Position numbers and translations under genes: made by a program
The notes under the pieces: model-generated
What the model was told of the DNA's origin: nothing
The model's database searches: none
The model's input: only the letters and a program-made list of their open reading frames with translations
Shown: one piece after another, positions 579-61,664 of the stretch
Layout of the letters: every line of letters begins with the position of its first letter
Position numbering within the stretch: position 1 is the stretch's first letter
Assembly: GCA_019828565.1 (NCBI GenBank)
Contig: JAHDYR010000013.1
Location: forward strand, 1 to 64,000
Length of the DNA stretch: 64,000 nt
Direction of reading: 5' to 3'
From: Carpediemonas membranifera BICM
Lineage: Eukaryota > Protista > Fornicata

Positions 579-700
579 TGTGGTTCAATGGGTGTTGAAC
601 TTTTACTGAGGAGAAGACTCGACACAAGGGTGTCGAGGAGAAACTCCTTGACTATTAAATATAACGTAAATCTGTGTAACTTTGGGTAGGACCCACAACA
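579..700 (-). repeat. 3' LTR (122 bp)
   Basis: Identical to 6401-6522. Confidence 0.97.
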
Positions 701-710
701 CTGCCCCTCC
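701..710 (-). promoter_or_regulatory. Polypurine tract (GGAGGGGCAG)
   Basis: Purine-rich tract immediately upstream of the 3' LTR on the element strand. Confidence 0.85.
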
Positions 711-1565
711 ATGCCTGGTATAGGCATGACAGAGAGACTTGACGTCAGCATTTCACCAAAGGCCTGGACGGTGCCACCCGACCGCCAACGGTGACTCATA
801 GGGCTGGCAACCCCATGGCCTGAGTGCTTTCGCATCTAGCTGAACGAAATCAAAATGATGGTATCATGATCTAACTGCGGTACCGCTATGTGAGCTCTGT
901 TTCAAAAATGGTGAAACGTGACGGAAAGGCTTACCACTGCCCCTCCACGGCCTTCCTAGGCCGTCTTCACAAACCTTATACGTGTTATATGCCATTCCAT
1001 GTAATTCGAAGGCCAAGAACGATTGCTCTAGCAAACACTGCCAATGCTGAGCCCTTATCGCTCATAATCACACAGACGCCGAAAAACGTACTTAGAAGCT
1101 CCAATTCGGCTCCGTTGAGGAGTTCTGAGGCTTCTAATTTTCTGCGTCCAACTGTACTTGAATAACAACATCAAACTGACCGGAAGGAGCACTAGGAAGC
1201 TCCTAATGCCTTATTACCGACAATAAATGCATGCTTGAAGACTAAGATGACCTTGTTAGTTGTTCCTTCGACCGTTTCCGAGAAATGTGCAGGATATGTC
1301 GCCGTCAACTCATTTGATGTCGGACAACACAGCCGTAGAGGCCGTTCTGAAGGAAATTCGTGCCAAAAATCACCGAACTTGGTGATGACGATCTGGCTAG
1401 GCCACTTATTGTTGCCCATACGTCCGTTTGTCGTTCCCTTCGCGCTCAGAAGTATCGTGGACGCAAGCGCATGGTCACCGACAATCTGTAAGTAACAAAC
1501 ATCAACCGTGAGGTTATATAGTCACCGCGTGCAAGCCTCAGAACGCATCACTCGCACCCCTGACG

Positions 1566-2402
1566 ATGACGACTCTGATGCCCCACGACATCAAGGCCGA
1601 GGTTGCCCGACGCCTGGAAGGTTACACCAACTCCATCGAGCTGCCGCTCCAGCGAATCTTTGACGCTATTGAGCAAGGTCGTCTGAACGACGCAGCCGTA
1701 GTGCAGGACGTGAAGCTGACCCAGCAGGTCTTGGCTCTCGTGGCTCACTGCCAGGTCGCGCTTGCCGGTGTGAGGGCCCACCTCAAGCTCGGCAAGAAGC
1801 GCTTGACCGATGGCGACATCGTGTCGGCCGCGATCCGGGGCCGCGACATCACGCTGGGTGGGTCTTCACCCGGTAATGGTCACTACTCTGCAGCTCTCGT
1901 GGCGGCTGTGCGGACTGCCGGCGGGGTCAAGTCGGACACTACAGCGCGCGGATATCTTAACCGCCTGTTGGTCCTCGTCCTCGCACCGGACTACTTCCGT
2001 GTCGCTGTCTACGGCATCAGCCGGCGCATCCCGGCTCCCAACGACTTCTGGGCAACCCTGGTCAGCCGCTTGTGCCACGACGGCTACCTGCCCGCCATTG
2101 GCGATGAGGCTCACTGGGAGCCGCTTCAGGTCTCTGATCCGGACCGCTACTACACTGTCACGTGCGTAGTCCGTCACGAGTATCTGAAGACGACTTGTGG
2201 TCCCGGGTCTTTTGTGTTGATCCTGCAGTATGACGGATACTCGGGACTCAGCATCGTGTCCCTCAACGCTGATCTCTGCCTTGTCCGGTGTGTGCGAGAG
2301 TACTTGGCTGAGAACGCCCTTGAGCGCCACGCTGACCCGACTTGGTTGGTCGAGCTGACGGACACGGAGGAGACGGAAGACGAGGAATCTAGCTCTGAAT
2401 AA
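1566..2402 (+). CDS. Antisense accessory ORF inside the Ty3 element (278 aa) with a degenerate chromodomain-like C-terminus
   Basis: Long ATG-initiated ORF with GC3-rich codons, convergent with pol. YYTVTCVVRHEY...LILQYDGYS...LVRCVREYL resembles chromo-fold spacing; acidic tail. Confidence 0.7.
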   Translation: MTTLMPHDIKAEVARRLEGYTNSIELPLQRIFDAIEQGRLNDAAVVQDVKLTQQVLALVAHCQVALAGVRAHLKLGKKRLTDGDIVSAAIRGRDITLGGSSPGNGHYSAALVAAVRTAGGVKSDTTARGYLNRLLVLVLAPDYFRVAVYGISRRIPAPNDFWATLVSRLCHDGYLPAIGDEAHWEPLQVSDPDRYYTVTCVVRHEYLKTTCGPGSFVLILQYDGYSGLSIVSLNADLCLVRCVREYLAENALERHADPTWLVELTDTEETEDEESSSE

Positions 2403-2444
2403 ATCGTTTGTTCCTCGAGGATACAGCTTCGATGTTGAGAAGTT

Positions 2445-3752
2445 TTACAGACCGTCACGCTTGGCTTGGTCAGACTTCAAATATGTATCGAGGGCTTCCA
2501 AATCTTTGACGTGCGAATAAGGTTCGAATGAAGCCTCTGAATCCTCGAATCCGACCCAGTGTACGAGGTACTCGCGCCTTGACTTGGGGCCCGAGCCTCT
2601 AGAGCGTGAGATGCGCTCGACATGCCACTCATCGACGGAAGCGGCTGCGAGGTCATAGATCTGTTGCTCCGAGAGCTTGCCTGGGTCAAATCTTCGCACA
2701 CGTGCCGCGTCTACCTTGATAGTTGGACCGTCCGCTGACTGACTGAGGTCTTGGACCTCATATGCGACGACAACACCATCACGTTTGACGGCTGCGACAC
2801 GCCTCATGGGGCCGCGCCAGCCCGGGGCTAGCTTGCTCGGTGGTCTTGGGTAGTATTTGACCAGCACGAAACGGCTCAATATCTCGCTTCTCGATGAGGT
2901 TGCCTTTGCGAGAGCGTCTTCGCGCATGGCTCTAATCCTTGCTTTGGCGAGTTGGATGGCGGCATCGGCTGCGGCTAGCTTCGACTGTGGCGGACCAGCC
3001 GAGGCGGCATCCGTGATATAGATCGATGACGGTATTGATAAATTGGCGCCAAACATGATCTCGGCCGGAGTCAACCGGGTCGGGATCCTGGGCATTGAGT
3101 TGACCAAGAATTGGGCGACTGGTAGGTGTGCTACCCAATCGTTATTCCTTAACTCCAGCTTCCTGGCTCTGAGGATGCGTTCGACCTCCTTGTTCGCGCG
3201 TTCGACGACACCGTTGCTCTGGGGATGGTATGCTGTCGTTATGTGGACGTCGAACCCCATCTCTTCGGAGAGGCGTTTGAACAGAGCGTTTTTGAACTCT
3301 GAGCCCCCATCCGATTGGACGACTTCGGGGCATCCGTATCGTAGAATCCAGGTGTTGACCAATGCGTTGGCTGCGTCTTTGGCTGAGGTGCTGTTGACCG
3401 GGACTAGCTCTGTCCAGCGGGAGCACATGTCGATCATTACTGTCACGTAGGACAGGCCGTTGACCGTCGGTAGCGGACCCATGGTGTCAATGGCCACACG
3501 CCGGAACGGGAGGTCTACAGCTGTATGCAGGCCGTCGGGCGTATCAACAGGAGGGCGGGCCAAGACTTGGCACTCTGGACACGCGGTAATCACGTCGTCT
3601 ACGACTTGACGGGAGACAGACAAACCGTCGGCCCTAAGTTGCTCGGTTGTCATCCGGCGAGACAGATGAGCTCCTGCTGTGAGATGAGCGCGGGATACCT
3701 GATCCCTCGACGCCTGTTGCATGGAGAATACTCGAGAGACCGTCGGCTCCAC
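2445..3752 (-). CDS. Ty3 integrase plus chromodomain (pol C-terminal part)
   Basis: HHCC (H..H..CPEC), DDE (IDTMG, SDGGSEF, VERAN), GPY/F-like WRGPM, chromodomain EWHVERI...YLVHWVGF...SFEP. Confidence 0.95.
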   Translation of the reverse strand: MEPTVSRVFSMQQASRDQVSRAHLTAGAHLSRRMTTEQLRADGLSVSRQVVDDVITACPECQVLARPPVDTPDGLHTAVDLPFRRVAIDTMGPLPTVNGLSYVTVMIDMCSRWTELVPVNSTSAKDAANALVNTWILRYGCPEVVQSDGGSEFKNALFKRLSEEMGFDVHITTAYHPQSNGVVERANKEVERILRARKLELRNNDWVAHLPVAQFLVNSMPRIPTRLTPAEIMFGANLSIPSSIYITDAASAGPPQSKLAAADAAIQLAKARIRAMREDALAKATSSRSEILSRFVLVKYYPRPPSKLAPGWRGPMRRVAAVKRDGVVVAYEVQDLSQSADGPTIKVDAARVRRFDPGKLSEQQIYDLAAASVDEWHVERISRSRGSGPKSRREYLVHWVGFEDSEASFEPYSHVKDLEALDTYLKSDQAKRDGL

Positions 3753-5060
3753 CGTTGTCCAGACCGGCGATGTGCTGTAGGGTGAAATCTAAATCGGCGA
3801 TCGAATCAGCCCACCGGCGGACCTTGGCGTTGGTGGACCGGTACATATAGAGTAGGTTCCGGTGATCCGTGAGAATAGTAAAGCTCTCCCAGCACAGGAA
3901 CTTGCGCCATCGTTGTAACGCTGCGACGATAGCGTAGGCTTCTTTCTCACCGGTACACCAGCGTGACTGGACGTCGTTGAACGCACGCGACATATAGCAA
4001 ACTGGTCGGCCCTCTTGGAGTAAGACTGCTCCGTACCCGACATCGGATGCGTCAGTCATGACAGTGTGAGGCTTAGTCGCGTCGAACATGGCTAGAGCGT
4101 CGGCCGAACATAAAGCTTGTTTCAGATCGTCCAGCGACTTCTGAAGAACGTCTCGAGGGGGTCTGCCGACCGGACATGGCGTCTAGCAGAGGCTTAGCTC
4201 GGACCGCGAAGTTGGGTATGTAATCGCGGAAATAGTTGAGGAATCCGTTGAGACCCTGCATGCCCTTCGTGGATGAAGACAGCTTGAGGTTCGCGATATC
4301 TTCGGTCCGCTGGGGTGAGATCTTCACGCTGCCTTGGGATATGATCCACCCGAGGAACTCGACCTCTTGCCGACCGAACTGGCACTTATCTCGGCCGAGC
4401 TGAAGGTTAAGCTTGTCAACGCGTTGCATGACTTTTTCGAGGTTTCCCAGGTACTCGTCCTCATCCGCACCCATGACGATGATGTCATCAATGTATATGA
4501 CACAGGCGGAGCCCACCAGACCCTTGAACCCGTCTTCCATCGCCCTCTGGAAGTACGCTCCGGCGTTACGTAAGCCGAAGGGCATCCGTGTATATTGGTA
4601 TTGACCAAAAACAGTACGGAAGGCGGTTAGGTGACGGCACCGTTCAGAAAGAGGGATCTGATGGTATCCTGCTGACAAGTCTAGGGTAGCGAACACAGAC
4701 TTTCCGGACAGTTGAGTGAGAACTTCGTCTATGCGAGGGATGGGGTAGTCGAATGGTTCCGTTAGTTGATTGATCTCGCGGAAGTCGACGACAAAACGCG
4801 TCTTTCCCCCTTCTTTGGAACTATGATGGTAGGGCTCGCGTATTGAGACTGGCATGCCTCGATGTAGCGCTTTGCCAGGAGCGTATTAATGTGCTCTTGA
4901 ATGATCGGGACTTTCGGCGGGGGAACATAGTACGGCCGAATGTGTACGACTCTGTCGCCCTTGAGGACCAAATCATACGGTTCGAGCCGGCTTGGCTCGG
5001 TACGGTCCACGAATGTCCGGGCGTAACGCTTGAGGATGTCGGCCTGCCTCTGAGAAAAAG
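3750..5060 (-). CDS. Ty3 reverse transcriptase and RNase H (frameshifted pieces)
   Basis: LDLSAGYHQI, MPFGL, YIDD; RNase H TDASDVGYGAVLLQ, EKEAYAIV, TDHRNL. The pieces lie in different frames; boundaries are approximate. Confidence 0.93.
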
Positions 5061-6379
5061 GAAGAGGACATGGCTCTGGCTTGCGCGACGTACTTCTCGA
5101 ATGTAGGTGGTTCGTCGCTGGCTGCGAGCTCGCTGGTAGGCTCAGACAACGAAGGGAGAAGGCCGATCTCCACCATCTGAGGGTAACCCAGGCATACATC
5201 GAAAGCGGTCGACAGGACGTAGGCCTTAATAGTGATAGAGCATCCGCGCGGAGTGAATGGCGAGGGCGCTAAGACGAGGCGGAAGGATACCTGACCATCG
5301 GCCTCTCTGACGCCGCCCACTGTCTCGATAAGTGTCTTCTCGTGTGAGATCCACTTCACTGCCTTGCCGTGGCAGAGCTTGGGGTCAATGGTTGCGCAGT
5401 CAGCGCCCGAGTCGAACAGGACGGACACGACTTGCTTAAGAATGCTAGCCTTGACGGAGGGGAGGACACTCTGACGGGAACCGAGAGAAAACACACAACG
5501 AGCTGAATTTACCTCAGAACGGCAGAATTCAGCTCGGTGGCCCGGCTTCTGGCACTTGGAACAGGTTGTCTTCGGAGCAGGGCATCGGCGAGCGGAGTGA
5601 CCGACCTTACCGCAGTTGAAGCACACGAATGGCTTCTTCTCGTGCTTGGGCTTGTCGATCGGCTTGCCTTTTGAGGGGGCTACGTTCGTGCGGTCAGGCT
5701 CGCGTCGATGAGGGTTCTTCGGACCGCTCCCCGTGTGCCGTGTATGGGAGGGCGTGGTGTTGGTACGCTGTGAGTCGGAGACCCCCGCAGCGCCGAAGGA
5801 AGCGATCATCTCCTTGGACTCCTTGAGGTCGCGTGACATGACGAGGACATCAGCCATTGCGTCCTTGAGATCCTTGCGCTCCGTTGATTCTCTGACTCGA
5901 TACATGATGCGACTGTTGTTGGGGAACTTGAAGCAGCGGCTGTACGTCTCCTTCAAGACGTCCTCGGGATCTTCGGGTTGAACGAGCTTCAAGAGCAGAT
6001 TGAATCGGCGGTTCACTCGAGCAACCTCATCAGGCTCGAAGGACTTGGCGGGGACTCGGAAGAGCTGTAGACGCATGCTCGGGCGAGAAGGTCGAAGGGC
6101 AGCACCGAGGCGCTTGAGGACTCGTTCATCTTGGGCTGCGACACGACGTTTCTTACGGAGCTTCGCGGAGAGCAGGAGAGGAGTGTCTTCAACCTCTTCG
6201 TCGTCGTTAAGGCCTGCTAGCTCTGCTATGCTAGGCTCGATGAGGTCAATAACATCATCGCGGCCGCCTAAGGCGCGATGATCGTGGAGGTTATCCGCAA
6301 AGTCCAAAAGAGCGTCCATGGAGGACTTCTTCAGGAGAGGCGGATTCTTCTTCAGGCTTCTGTAAGTTTCCGTACCCAT
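4973..6379 (-). CDS. Ty3 Gag-protease
   Basis: Two CCHC knuckles (CFNCGKVGHSARRC, CSKCQKPGHRAEFC); aspartic protease LFDSGAD. Confidence 0.93.
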   Translation of the reverse strand: MGTETYRSLKKNPPLLKKSSMDALLDFADNLHDHRALGGRDDVIDLIEPSIAELAGLNDDEEVEDTPLLLSAKLRKKRRVAAQDERVLKRLGAALRPSRPSMRLQLFRVPAKSFEPDEVARVNRRFNLLLKLVQPEDPEDVLKETYSRCFKFPNNSRIMYRVRESTERKDLKDAMADVLVMSRDLKESKEMIASFGAAGVSDSQRTNTTPSHTRHTGSGPKNPHRREPDRTNVAPSKGKPIDKPKHEKKPFVCFNCGKVGHSARRCPAPKTTCSKCQKPGHRAEFCRSEVNSARCVFSLGSRQSVLPSVKASILKQVVSVLFDSGADCATIDPKLCHGKAVKWISHEKTLIETVGGVREADGQVSFRLVLAPSPFTPRGCSITIKAYVLSTAFDVCLGYPQMVEIGLLPSLSEPTSELAASDEPPTFEKYVAQARAMSSSFFSEAGRHPQALRPDIRGPYRAKPARTV

Positions 6380-6400
6380 ATGTTTTGGTAGTACTAGTAC

Positions 6401-6522
6401 TGTGGTTCAATGGGTGTTGAACTTTTACTGAGGAGAAGACTCGACACAAGGGTGTCGAGGAGAAACTCCTTGACTATTAAATATAACGTAAATCTGTGTA
6501 ACTTTGGGTAGGACCCACAACA
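6401..6522 (-). repeat. 5' LTR (122 bp)
   Basis: Identical to 579-700; followed on the element strand by the palindrome GTACTAGTAC, with the gag ATG 21 nt from the LTR. Confidence 0.97.
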
Positions 6523-20738: not shown

Positions 20739-21030
20739 GATGAGATGGGCTTTCAGGTGAGGTGTGAATAGCCTTAAACTGCACATTATAAGCCAGTGTT
20801 ATAGGAGCCCAATATTTTAACAATTTTGCCCAATATGGGATTAAGACCGTGTATCCAAGCACACGCTCGCTGGAAATAGACAAGGCTCGTAAACCTGGAA
20901 ATGCATCGCCTCTTGCCAGCAGGTCAGACAGTCAGCTGCGTCAGTCCCCTTGGTCCCCTCCATCTGCCCGCGCACCTCCATCTGCTGCCAGACGTCAGAG
21001 TTTTTCCAACAGTCTTTACGGGAACGTGGA

Positions 21031-23317: not shown

Positions 23318-23769
23318 TGTGCTATTGAAGGGTCGAACAATGTGTTTATACTGCGCAACACTGCCCTGTCTCCCTCCTACTCACGTCTAAAGTCGGCGAC
23401 TCACATGGGTGAGAACGGCGGGCTCCCAGTCTCCCAGGCTGTCCCACGCATTCTCTCTTGCGTCTGGGCAATTGCTGACGGAGTGGAGACGGTGAGTGGC
23501 CTCATCAGCCACTTCAACGGGGAGTACTCGATGTCGCTCCGCCAGCCTCGCCTCGTGCCGATCGTGCCCATGGCCCCCGTCCGACCGGGCTTCATGGCCT
23601 ACGGTGACACGATGGGCCTACTGAATGATAATTTCTGTCATCGTGTGGGAATTAATCACGCACTCCCACACGCCACCAAACCGTTGACAGAAGAGCAGGA
23701 GGAACAATACCAGAACAACCCAAGGTCAATGGGCCGTCTGCTCAGGTAATGTGTTTATTCTGCGCAACA
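23318..23769. mobile_element. Non-autonomous miniature element (TGT...ACA, 5-bp TSD CACAA), sister of the Fanzor element
   Basis: First 79 bp are identical to 40299-40377; terminal direct repeat AATGTGTTTAT[A/T]CTGCGCAACA at both ends; CACAA at 23313-23317 and 23770-23774. Confidence 0.8.
23405..23749 (+). CDS. Orphan cargo ORF (~114 aa) in the miniature element
   Basis: ATG ORF filling the element interior; no recognisable family. Confidence 0.35.
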   Translation: MGENGGLPVSQAVPRILSCVWAIADGVETVSGLISHFNGEYSMSLRQPRLVPIVPMAPVRPGFMAYGDTMGLLNDNFCHRVGINHALPHATKPLTEEQEEQYQNNPRSMGRLLR

Positions 23770-26642: not shown

Positions 26643-26724
26643 CGGATGTTTACAATCAGCACCTCAACGGCAGAACTTCTTCTACCCCAACGGCAGTGTC
26701 TCCACCATGGCCACCGCACTTTAA
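26643..26724 (-). repeat. Dispersed ~80-bp structured repeat, copy A
   Basis: Reverse complement matches 52773-52855 and 54646-54721. Confidence 0.9.
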
Positions 26725-26748
26725 GAGATAGTGACATGCCGGCAAACG

Positions 26749-27681: not shown

Positions 27682-27828
27682 AGGGCGTCTGGAGTCTGGC
27701 TGACAAGGGTCCTAGGTGGAGAATAGCGGCAGTAGCATGCATACAGTGCGTCCATGGGTTGTACATCCCCTTGATCGCCCAGTTCATGCCGGTTAAACTG
27801 CCCGACTCAGAAGAGCAGCTTGCGGCCA

Positions 27829-37064: not shown

Positions 37065-37209
37065 GCCAGCACCCAGCCATCCGTAAATATTGCACATTGG
37101 ATATCAGCAGAGGGCGGCGAGGCCGGTATAAGTGGGGGGCCTACCATGGCGGCGGGGAGCATGCCTGGCGACGGATTCCAGAAAGATGCACTTTATGGCA
37201 GAAAATTCG

Positions 37210-40211: not shown

Positions 40212-40298
40212 TCATAGACTCTTCTGTAAGTTATAAAGGCGCTCGTTGGTGCCGCTATACTGATCCGAGGGTATAGGACAGTTTAAGGTCAGAAACTC

Positions 40299-41767
40299 TG
40301 TGCTATTGAAGGGTCGAACAATGTGTTTATACTGCGCAACACTGCCCTGTCTCCCTCCTACTCACGTCTAAAGTCGGTAGGGAGATCGTCTTCTCCAGGG
40401 CTTCCACAAAGCGTCTTCTTCGTGGACGTCAGCACAGCTGCAAACATCACAATCTCAAGCTCACACGTCTCATTGTCTTCTATTCCACATTAAATTCACT
40501 TCTACACTTGTATATGCTGGTAATGGTGTTCATCGTCGGCTCTTATATGACATCTTCATCAATGACCAGCTGCACACCTGTAGTGCGCAACAAGATGGAG
40601 ATATATACGATCAAAGCCTCCATCAAGCAAGCTCTCAGACAGAACTACACCGAAGAACGGAGAGTGGGGGATTACGCCGCAGCAAAATATCTCTACTCAT
40701 GCCTGCTGGCCCGGCTCGCGGTTGAATGCTATGCGCAGCGCCGGCAACTCCCCCTACATGACGGTTCCGTACGTTCGAAAGCGAGCGAGAGGGCGGGAGA
40801 AAGAGCGCCCCCGACTCGGGACCAATAATGCCGAGGCTCCGCCCGCGCCGGATCCTGATGTCCACCTCATGGGGTTCGACACGGGCGCGAGGCCCATCGG
40901 AGGGTATTACATCAGGCACCCCGATGGCACCACCAGCTCCGGCGTCCTTCCAAAGTGCGGATACACTAAGACGCCAAGTTTCGGCTTTGATATGACGGCC
41001 GCGTCGTTCAAGAGCACAAGACTAGTGAGTATCAACAACTCTATTAGGTTTGTGCTGGACAACGCGAACGAAATTTTCGAGGCTGGAATGCGTAAGTCTT
41101 TCCGCCGAGTGCGCTTTGCGAACCACATCCTTCGCCAGAAGCACCTCGCCCGCTGCGGCCAACAGTTGGCTCGGGAGTTCGGTTGGCGTCGCCACCATCC
41201 CATCGCCACCCCCATTCGCCTGAAAGTTTTCTACAGGAGCTCGGGATTCACCACGCCTGCTGGTATGTCCATTCCTTGCGCGCCATATCGAAAGTTCGCG
41301 AGAGAGATAGTTCCCCTTCTCAAGGGGTATAACATTGTCGTCGATCTTAACATGGTTAACGAGGACCGCACCACCGTCGTCTGCCCTCACTGCCACGCCC
41401 CCTACAAGCGAGTTCGTCCGCGTGATGACCAGCACGTTCACCCACATCGTGTGATGCTCTGCGAAAATCCACAGTGCCGTGGTGCTCAGTGGCGCGCAAC
41501 AGTTCCTGATGCTCTGAATGTTGATCAGCGGGACAAGAGTGCTGCAGAGAACATCCTGTGGCGTTCTCTTGCCACGGAAGATGAGCTCAGTGGCTCTCCG
41601 TTCAGTCGCACATTGATCCCACGTCTTCAAACATCATTCCAGTATCATTAATTGGCTAACCGCCAACATTCGTCTACGGACGGATGATGCTGTACAGTTT
41701 GGCACTTTGATCGTTCCTTTCAGGCCCTGTCTTGGAGGTTCGAACAATGTGTTTATACTGCGCAACA
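40299..41767. mobile_element. Miniature LTR-like element carrying Fanzor
   Basis: TGT...ACA termini; direct repeats 40299-40341 and 41728-41767; imperfect 5-bp TSD AACTC/AGCTC; PPT-like tract 40342-40358 on the minus strand. Confidence 0.75.
40595..41651 (+). CDS. Fanzor1 (eukaryotic TnpB/OMEGA nuclease), split in two frames and internally shortened
   Basis: N-terminal YTIKASIKQAL...LAVECYAQRRQLP (from 40595). Second frame: RuvC-I GFDTG, FRRVRF bridge region, RuvC-II VNEDRTT, Zn finger CPHC...CENPQC, RuvC-III QRDKSAAENIL. Confidence 0.88.
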
Positions 41768-41787
41768 AGCTCCTGTTTGGCCTGTAC
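41652..41787 (+). ncRNA. Candidate Fanzor omegaRNA (scaffold to 41767, guide from the flank)
   Basis: Directly 3' of the stop codon; hairpins TTGGC/GCCAA and CATTCGTC-TACG-GACGGATG (cUACGg tetraloop); ends at the element boundary. Confidence 0.55.
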
Positions 41788-61469: not shown

Positions 61470-61664
61470 ATGCTACGTGTGGGTTGTCGCTTGTGGCTAA
61501 TTAAGGGACCTTTGCGGCATTCCCGGTTGACTCCCAAGGAAGCAAAGGTCGAGCAACTTGTGCGTCTTTGGTAACTGGGTGCTTCATTACACCGTGGGCC
61601 CACCCTACTCCACCCTGAGCGCTGCTATCATCATTTCGCACTTTAACCCGGATCCCGGTGAGCG

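Follow-up and report, generated by a model that had tools for sequence, protein, structure and literature searches.

Fanzor-A, a family of nuclease-bearing repeats in the genome of Carpediemonas membranifera, is probably a non-autonomous element with the ends of a Ty3 long terminal repeat (LTR) retrotransposon, integrated in trans by a Ty3/chromovirus integrase and copied outside the canonical LTR cycle. The host is a free-living anaerobic metamonad and a deep-branching eukaryote. The copy described here occupies positions 40299-41767 of the window, by which we mean the whole stretch analyzed (contig C14:1-64000, 64,000 nucleotides [nt], of a 24.2-Mb, 69-contig assembly). It is a bounded repeat unit in which a decayed Fanzor-A copy holds its gene, for a probably RNA-guided nuclease, between two LTR-derived miniature ends. 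Across the genome the family has fixed boundaries and is bordered by target site duplications (TSDs), it has a terminus and a target in common with a Ty3/chromovirus family that we call Ty3-P, and its protein is a member of the TnpB/Fanzor superfamily. Integrase-dependent mobilization of Fanzor-A is well supported by the fixed ends, the TSDs, the LTR-derived left end, and an insertion point 10 nt from one motif that Ty3-P and Fanzor-A have in common; the identity of the acting integrase and its tethering we infer.

The features of this copy, and of a second copy in the window, are as follows.

40278-40288, plus strand: target motif ACAGTTTAAGG (consensus GCAGTTTAAGG), its last base 10 nt ahead of the element; from a position-frequency table of 34 left flanks.
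40294-40298: left copy of the TSD, AACTC, by direct reading.
40299-40341, minus strand: left end (LE), a 43-nt miniature LTR, TGTGCT...GCAACA as read on the plus strand; an LTR with an internal deletion, from alignment to the Ty3-P and Ty3-W LTRs.
40342-40365, minus strand: polypurine tract (PPT) abutting the miniature LTR; invariant or nearly so in 28 copies.
40595-40763, plus strand: N-terminal Fanzor fragment (MEIYTIKAS..., ATG at 40595), out of frame with the RuvC half.
40763-40773: internal-deletion junction, about 770 bp (most of the REC region) gone relative to full-length copies; from BLAST to L004 and L010.
40773-41651, plus strand: C-terminal Fanzor half with RuvC-I GFDTG, RuvC-II VNED, zinc finger, and RuvC-III QRDK.
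41693-41767, plus strand: right-end block, invariant or almost so among 31 copies; it may serve as omega-RNA scaffold, as integrase or packaging site, or as both.
41728-41767, minus strand: right end (RE), a 40-nt miniature LTR, TGTCTT...GCAACA as read on the plus strand; homologous to LE over its full length, with the last 12-15 nt diverged.
41768-41772: right copy of the TSD, AGCTC, one mismatch to AACTC, by direct reading.
23318-23769, plus strand: second Fanzor-A deletion derivative, 452 bp, bordered by a perfect CACAA duplication and equally far from the same motif.

The original prediction, made from the window alone, had placed a Fanzor gene between two TGT...ACA direct repeats with 28 nt in common and AACTC/AGCTC flanks. 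Direct reading bears out this arrangement, with repeats of 43 and 40 nt whose last 28 nt are identical. On the minus strand LE reads TGTTGCG...AATAGCACA, and just inside it GGAGGGAGACAGGGCAG, a polypyrimidine run when seen on the plus strand, directly abuts TGTTG. The predicted gene stands in part: the open reading frame (ORF) at 40722-41651 contains all three acidic RuvC motifs (GFDTG, VNED, and QRDK) and the CxxC...CxxxxC finger, but the gene is not complete, about 770 bp having been lost and the N-terminal piece left out of frame. The unit contains no transposase gene, full-length copies contain no second ORF, and a repeat search found no inverted pair at the unit's ends, where the terminal inverted repeat (TIR) is limited to 3 bp (TGT/ACA); the absence of transposase and TIRs had been predicted correctly. 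A different cargo was considered for the element at 23318-23769 and rejected, as the sequence inside it comes from the REC region of Fanzor.

Fanzor-A is a genuine mobile element, with termini of the form TG...CA and TSDs of 5 bp. Its protein has more than 128 six-frame matches in the genome, and a 28-mer of the terminal repeat has 228 genome matches, compared with 0 for a reversed control. Homology to the window copy begins at 40297-40300 and ends at 41767-41768 in nearly all of the approximately 50 loci fetched; because homology stops so uniformly across loci and the 28-mer is absent from the control, the repeats and boundaries are not due to chance. Full-length copies measure about 2.2-2.3 kb (L004, L006, and L010), and many deletion derivatives, of 280-1900 bp, keep both ends. 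A perfect 5-bp TSD of arbitrary sequence flanks 14 of 23 independent two-ended copies, for a chance expectation of about 1/1024 per copy; the window copy has its one mismatch, and the exceptions bear signs of later rearrangement (for example, swapped flanks at L013/L016 and a 2-bp deletion at the end of L030). The ends and TSD first read from a single copy hold for the family. A solo 43-nt repeat with a TSD of its own is present at L023. Copies diverge by 2-5% from one another and most, the window copy included, have broken genes; the ratio of nonsynonymous to synonymous substitution rates (dN/dS) among 20 copies is about 0.5, a weak signal.

Two Ty3 families bear on the origin of these ends, one of which lies in the window.

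579-6522, minus strand: Ty3-W, a Ty3/chromovirus element with gag zinc knuckle, reverse transcriptase (RT), RNase H, integrase, and chromodomain; 122-nt LTRs.

The junction of PPT and LTR in Ty3-W is GGAGGGGCAG followed by TGTTG, and its plus-strand start is TGTGGTTCAATGGG. The likeness of Fanzor-A to Ty3-W at the minus-strand PPT/LTR junction and at the LTR start, on which the original prediction had drawn, is present in the sequence in both places. As the partner of Fanzor-A, Ty3-W was rejected: its chromodomain and LTR are much less like Fanzor-A than are those of Ty3-P, and it is not at the position 10 nt from the motif.

The autonomous Ty3 partner with matching termini and PPT that had been anticipated was found in Ty3-P, which is presumably autonomous. 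The 15-mer at the left end of Fanzor-A, TGTGCTATTGAAGGG, has 141 exact occurrences in the genome, and same-strand pairs of it stand 4553 bp apart at at least 12 loci; these are the 92-nt LTRs of the 4.64-kb Ty3-P. Among at least 16 copies, identity across LTR and PPT is 99-100%, and solo LTRs exist too; Ty3-P is a very young chromovirus family. One Ty3-P end is contained in L039:2637-3028, where an ORF closing with a chromodomain (29.5 bits) is followed by the PPT and the LTR. Copies were located at the following positions, with at least 12 more elsewhere; the insertion sites number roughly 21.

C11:577555-582199: Ty3-P.
C1:1513863-1523158: two Ty3-P copies in tandem, 4 nt apart.
C65:162135-166782: Ty3-P.

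Aligned on the retro-sense strand, LE resolves into two pieces fused directly, the 7 nt that open an LTR and the ~36 nt that close the LTR of Ty3-P; the PPT stands in front of it, and its outer 32-37 nt are identical to the U5 end of the Ty3-P LTR. The 7 nt of U3 type read TGTTGCG in Fanzor-A, TGATGCA in Ty3-P, and TGTTGTG in Ty3-W. This layout recurs, in other sequences, in two more Fanzor families, B and C, where it consists of an LE-specific part, a repeat of about 30 nt ending in CA, a polypyrimidine run, the ORF, and the repeat again; both have TG...CA ends, 5-bp TSDs, and a PPT beside the repeat. A search for LTR-pair partners of families B and C via their left ends gave no clear signal. 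These alignments support the view that the ends of Fanzor-A derive from Ty3 LTR ends with the adjoining PPT.

Fanzor-A and Ty3-P also have an insertion point in common. The motif GCAGTTTAAGG lies 10 nt upstream of the left end in nearly every Fanzor-A copy. Searched genome-wide, the motif followed by any 10 nt and the left end has 53 matches at ≤2 mismatches, compared with 0 for the control, and the opposite orientation of Fanzor-A at the motif has 0 matches. The 10 nt between motif and element are variable in sequence among the 34 left flanks. Ty3-P stands at the same distance from the same motif at five sites.

C54:66854: Ty3-P with its U5 end proximal to the motif.
C26:903731, C3:174122, C11:582199, and C1:208030: Ty3-P with its U3 end proximal to the motif (control, 0).

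The order on C11 is motif-N5-TACGC-[Ty3-P]-TACGC-[Fanzor-A]-TACGC, which means that one 5-bp target received two integrations in turn; the 5-bp TSD of Ty3-P can be read directly from it. Head-to-head pairs of Ty3-P and Fanzor-A, 5-7 bp apart, are present on C13 and C15. Family C lies 9-10 nt from the motif, and family B is inverted, 12 nt away on the motif's other side. While Fanzor-A always has its U5-like end at the motif (53 versus 0), Ty3-P mostly has its U3 end there (4 versus 1); in both, the strand that encodes the cargo has the same direction as the motif.

Individual cases in the window suggest that the motif is a candidate core-promoter or initiator element. In its 11-nt form, GCA[GC]TTTA[AT]G[GC], it is found 3-50 nt upstream of host-gene start codons in the window, at these sites among others.

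20772-20782, minus strand: host motif site.
26716-26726, plus strand: host motif site.
27791-27801, minus strand: host motif site.
37188-37198, plus strand: host motif site.
61638-61648, plus strand: host motif site.

Scored with a position weight matrix (PWM), the motif accompanies 11 of 40 ORF starts against a background of 19%, which is no clear excess, probably because short introns break ORFs. The 28-nt terminal repeat of Fanzor-A itself contains a motif match, GCAGTATAAAC (PWM score, 9.9), on the minus strand at 40325-40335 and 41751-41761, and an equivalent promoter-like match is present on the plus strand of the family B repeat.

These features can be joined in one scheme. A full Fanzor-A of about 2.25 kb consists of the nuclease gene, two miniature LTR ends of 43 and 40 nt, and a PPT beside one of them, and encodes no transposase. 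Integrase would be supplied in trans by a Ty3/chromovirus, for which Ty3-P, with an LTR end that is the same as LE, is the best candidate. This integrase would make a 5-bp staggered cut exactly 10 bp downstream of GCAGTTTAAGG and is probably tethered to whatever binds the motif. Copying may proceed through a full-length cDNA or DNA intermediate that is processed at the terminal CA dinucleotides, and the nuclease probably uses an RNA whose sequence continues from the conserved right end into the flank.

Canonical reverse transcription leaves both LTRs of a new copy identical. In Fanzor-A, by contrast, no copy has identical left and right repeats, and their outer 12-15 nt are always unlike. The original prediction had raised this departure from standard LTR replication as a caveat; it proved decisive, as the variants are inherited through transposition. 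At position 3 of the shared 28 nt, the left repeat has A in nine copies, C in five, and G in eight, compared with G in all 23 right repeats; at position 6, A occurs in right repeats only. A 1.6-kb deletion subfamily present at at least six sites (L003, L009, L011, L012, and L014 among them) keeps the left/right difference. Repeat differences common to subfamilies that have spread indicate that Fanzor-A is inherited end to end and that its repeats are not regenerated from one template. Canonical LTR replication of Fanzor-A is thus not supported, and because the unlike repeats are inherited intact, copying appears to follow another route.

The search for a primer binding site (PBS) was negative. 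Inspection revealed no tRNA-type (TGG-type) PBS beside the right repeat, a query that fused the sequence next to RE with the Ty3-P LTR has 0 genome matches (the PBS of Ty3-P itself lies outside the part read), and there are no tRNA genes in the window. The right repeat of Fanzor-A contains a strictly conserved GTTCGAAC. In Ty3-W, a perfect 10-nt palindrome, GTACTAGTAC, stands at the expected tRNA-PBS position (6391-6400, plus strand), abutting the 5' LTR (6401) and only 22 nt before the gag ATG. The TRIM-like, integrase-mobilized vehicle of the original prediction therefore survives in one half, an integrase acting in trans on the evidence of the Ty3-P terminus and target, and loses the other, the TRIM replication cycle, to the inherited unlike repeats and the lack of a common PBS.

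It is established that the cargo protein belongs to the TnpB/Fanzor superfamily. The full-length Fanzor-A protein has about 620-640 aa, and the genome encodes three paralogous Fanzor families (A, B, and C) with about 40-50% protein identity, family C having at least one intact gene (642 aa; L053:2965-4890, minus strand). The D (GFDPG), E (NEFRTS/VNED), and D (HRDK) of RuvC I-III are invariant in eight paralogues, in which the zinc finger CxxC...CxxxxC between RuvC-II and RuvC-III is likewise conserved. A search for homologous proteins returned only Carpediemonas copies, and the best PDB sequence match, at the zinc-finger stretch, was Cas12f (E = 0.14). A profile of the three families reached distant PF07282 proteins (Cas12f1-like TNB domain) among 1.8 billion proteins, and hhalign against PF07282 relatives gave a probability of 99.6% and an E value of 2e-23 across 247 columns covering RuvC-I/II/III and the zinc finger. 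The ESM Atlas neighbours of the intact 642-aa family C protein are giant-virus PF07282/DUF8286 proteins of 600-700 aa, with a feature score of 0.98 and template modelling (TM) scores of 0.59-0.64 over about 500 residues. For a medium-quality model of the C-terminal half (pLDDT [predicted local distance difference test], 59), the top 41 Foldseek matches in the PDB are all Cas12f, SpuFz, PpFz, Fanzor2, TnpB, or other Cas12 structures, with E values down to 4e-5 and a TM score of only about 0.35. The identity first proposed from motifs is thus upheld by profile and structure comparison alike; protein size and Atlas neighbours make the Fanzor1 subtype likely.

Three observations concern families B and C. 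Public annotation names the family C Fanzor P0012 (L054) "cytosine deaminase," which looks like a mis-annotation, and names others "transposase" or "hypothetical." The element at L056 (C37:104209-111051) is a chimera whose left part is of family B and whose right part is of family C, and these two families therefore recombine. On C8, three family C left ends (930999, 933080, and 935159, plus strand) follow one another at a 2.08-kb spacing and may be a tandem array of a deletion derivative with common end repeats.

The right end of Fanzor-A is a plausible source of an omega-RNA. Its last ~75 nt show little or no variation among 31 copies, and the candidate RNA would end at ...GCGCAACA, with the guide in the flank; the original prediction had likewise proposed the LTR-like end as the boundary between scaffold and guide. 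Compared with shuffled sequences, the terminal 168 nt show better folding in family A (z score, -2.8, a modest signal) and family B (-3.9), though not in family C (-0.8). The only public runs that contain the region consist of contigs of uncertain library type, which show neither strand nor RNA ends. The right end has no Rfam match, and the 34 left flanks have no conserved base beside the TSD resembling a target-adjacent motif (TAM).

Three other explanations were weighed against integration of Fanzor-A in trans by a Ty3 integrase with copying outside the LTR cycle. Fanzor-A could be a true TRIM/SMART element, its minus-strand RNA packaged, reverse-transcribed by Ty3 RT via two strand transfers, and integrated. 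Such a life cycle agrees with the direct repeats of TG...CA form, with the PPT that adjoins the 3' repeat in families A, B, and C alike, with TSDs of 5 bp, with the solo repeat and its own TSD, and with the promoter-like GCAGTATAAAC on the minus strand of the repeat, but the unlike repeats and the inheritance of their variants (position 3, position 6, and the 1.6-kb subfamily) contradict it, and inspection found no tRNA-type PBS, nor one common to Ty3-P. We consider it quite improbable. Inheritance of unlike ends from end to end would instead be at home in a cut-and-paste or copy-out DNA transposon served by a separate Ginger-type or other DDE transposase, as would the many internal-deletion derivatives; TGT...ACA termini with 5-bp TSDs also suit Ginger-like elements. 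The likeness to Ty3-P would then reflect common descent of the enzymes or an exchange of ends. However, the TIR is only 3 bp long, no such transposase was seen beside any copy, and a Ty3 integrase accounts more simply for the 32-37 nt of identity with the LTR end of an active Ty3, for the PPT, and for the insertion point in common with that Ty3, so that we regard a DNA transposon as unlikely.

The nuclease itself might also place the element, cutting beside a TAM-like motif with a 5-nt stagger, after which repair would copy the element in and the TSD would be the filled-in overhang. The strict orientation and the fixed distance from the 11-nt motif speak for this, as does the staggered cutting generally known for Cas12/TnpB-type enzymes. 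Yet Ty3-P, which has no Fanzor, uses the same site and makes the same 5-bp duplication, and the 10 nt from motif to element are variable, so no fixed guide could pair there. Most copies, moreover, have broken genes, and homing by repair would not yield TSDs at new loci. Placement by the nuclease is accordingly very improbable.

Several points weigh against the explanation that we favor, a Ty3 integrase acting in trans on an element copied end to end. We know of no retroviral-type integrase that mobilizes an element with unregenerated ends. The opposite orientation biases of Fanzor-A and Ty3-P at the motif are unexpected if one integrase treats both alike, and TGTTGCG of Fanzor-A differs from TGATGCA of Ty3-P at two of seven positions. 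Copies of Ty3-P are 99-100% alike, whereas those of Fanzor-A are 2-5% apart, which indicates that most Fanzor-A insertions predate the current burst of Ty3-P. The part of Ty3-P that was read comprises the LTRs, the PPT, and the end of the chromodomain ORF, with RT, integrase, and PBS outside it. As to the nuclease, single-sequence Pfam and PDB searches with the 309-aa and 674-aa proteins gave nothing over threshold, and a full-length AlphaFold 2 model was poor (pLDDT 46).

Previous work has described Fanzors on DNA transposons. The carriers listed by Bao and Jurka (2013; PMC3627910) are DNA transposons only, and the Ty3 elements near Fanzor loci of Spizellomyces were judged to be chance insertions by Saito et al. 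(2023; PMC10432273). Gypsy was the commonest transposon within 10 kb of Fanzors in the analysis of Jiang et al. (2023; 10.1101/2023.06.13.544871), an association of proximity alone. The current view is that a TnpB/Fanzor nuclease earns its place by restoring an excising transposon, and a recent review (PMC13565253) reasons from this that retrotransposons are without a reason to carry TnpB/Fanzor and that none is known to do so. Our literature search found no paper naming Fanzor together with Carpediemonas. A carrier of an LTR-derived, integrase-dependent kind appears not to have been documented yet for such nucleases.

Like known Fanzor1 transposons (PMC3627910 and PMC10432273), Fanzor-A is a multi-copy element that has no transposase of its own and whose passenger is a TnpB homologue of 600-700 aa, equipped with a zinc finger and the D-E-D triad of RuvC; in both, the 3' end of the gene and a conserved noncoding block abut the element end, and deletion derivatives ("ghost" loci) are many. 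The known carriers, namely, Mariner, Helitron, Sola2, IS4, MuDR, hAT, CMC, Crypton-like, and IS607 elements, have TIRs or hairpins, while Fanzor-A has miniature LTRs, a PPT, 5-bp TSDs, and a putative Ty3 partner. The OMEGA elements of IS200/IS605 or IS607 type differ in having TnpA (a Y1 or serine recombinase) and subterminal hairpins and no TSD, compared with no second ORF and 5-bp TSDs in Fanzor-A. With TRIM, SMART, and LARD elements it has in common short TG...CA direct repeats, a PPT, a 5-bp TSD, an autonomous Ty3/copia partner (in this case presumed autonomous), and the formation of solo LTRs; unlike theirs, its repeats are 40-43 nt long and never identical, with the differences inherited, and it has no recognizable PBS and a large antisense coding cargo. 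Ginger DNA transposons, which are integrase-derived, resemble Fanzor-A in their TGT...ACA termini and short TSDs and in an enzyme of rve type akin to the Ty3 integrases, but they have long TIRs and encode their own integrase, neither of which is present in Fanzor-A. The fixed position within a few bp of a promoter element and the 5-bp TSD recall yeast Ty3, which targets Pol III start sites, and Tf1, which targets Pol II promoters; the Carpediemonas target differs in being an 11-nt motif upstream of protein-coding start codons, with family B on the motif's other side.

The chances are about even that Carpediemonas provides the first OMEGA/Fanzor nucleases on a retrotransposon-derived, integrase-dependent vehicle, with three old families bearing miniature LTRs and a PPT, which a Ty3 integrase places at one set distance from a core-promoter motif and whose end-to-end copying follows neither the standard LTR cycle nor any known cycle of a DNA transposon. 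If true, this would be a counterexample to the view that Fanzors have no reason to ride elements that do not excise; should Fanzor spread on LTR ends with a Ty3 integrase, the benefit of the nuclease to a copy-and-paste element would become a testable question. It would also provide an example from nature, in a deep-branching eukaryote, of integration targeted to promoters with the precision of a single base, and possibly a new way of mobilizing DNA with a retroviral-type integrase. The diverged pairs of Fanzor and right end in families A, B, and C, with at least one intact 642-aa family C gene, are offered for biochemistry.

Some minor observations concern the rest of the window. A 278-aa ORF at 1566-2402 (plus strand) lies antisense inside Ty3-W and has no Pfam match. 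About 20 tandem copies of CCTTA (TTACC register) at 226-324 are separated from the contig start by 225 nt, and Ty3-W follows after another 250 nt; the array may be a telomere-type repeat. A PFOR gene is present in the window and fits an anaerobic metamonad host.

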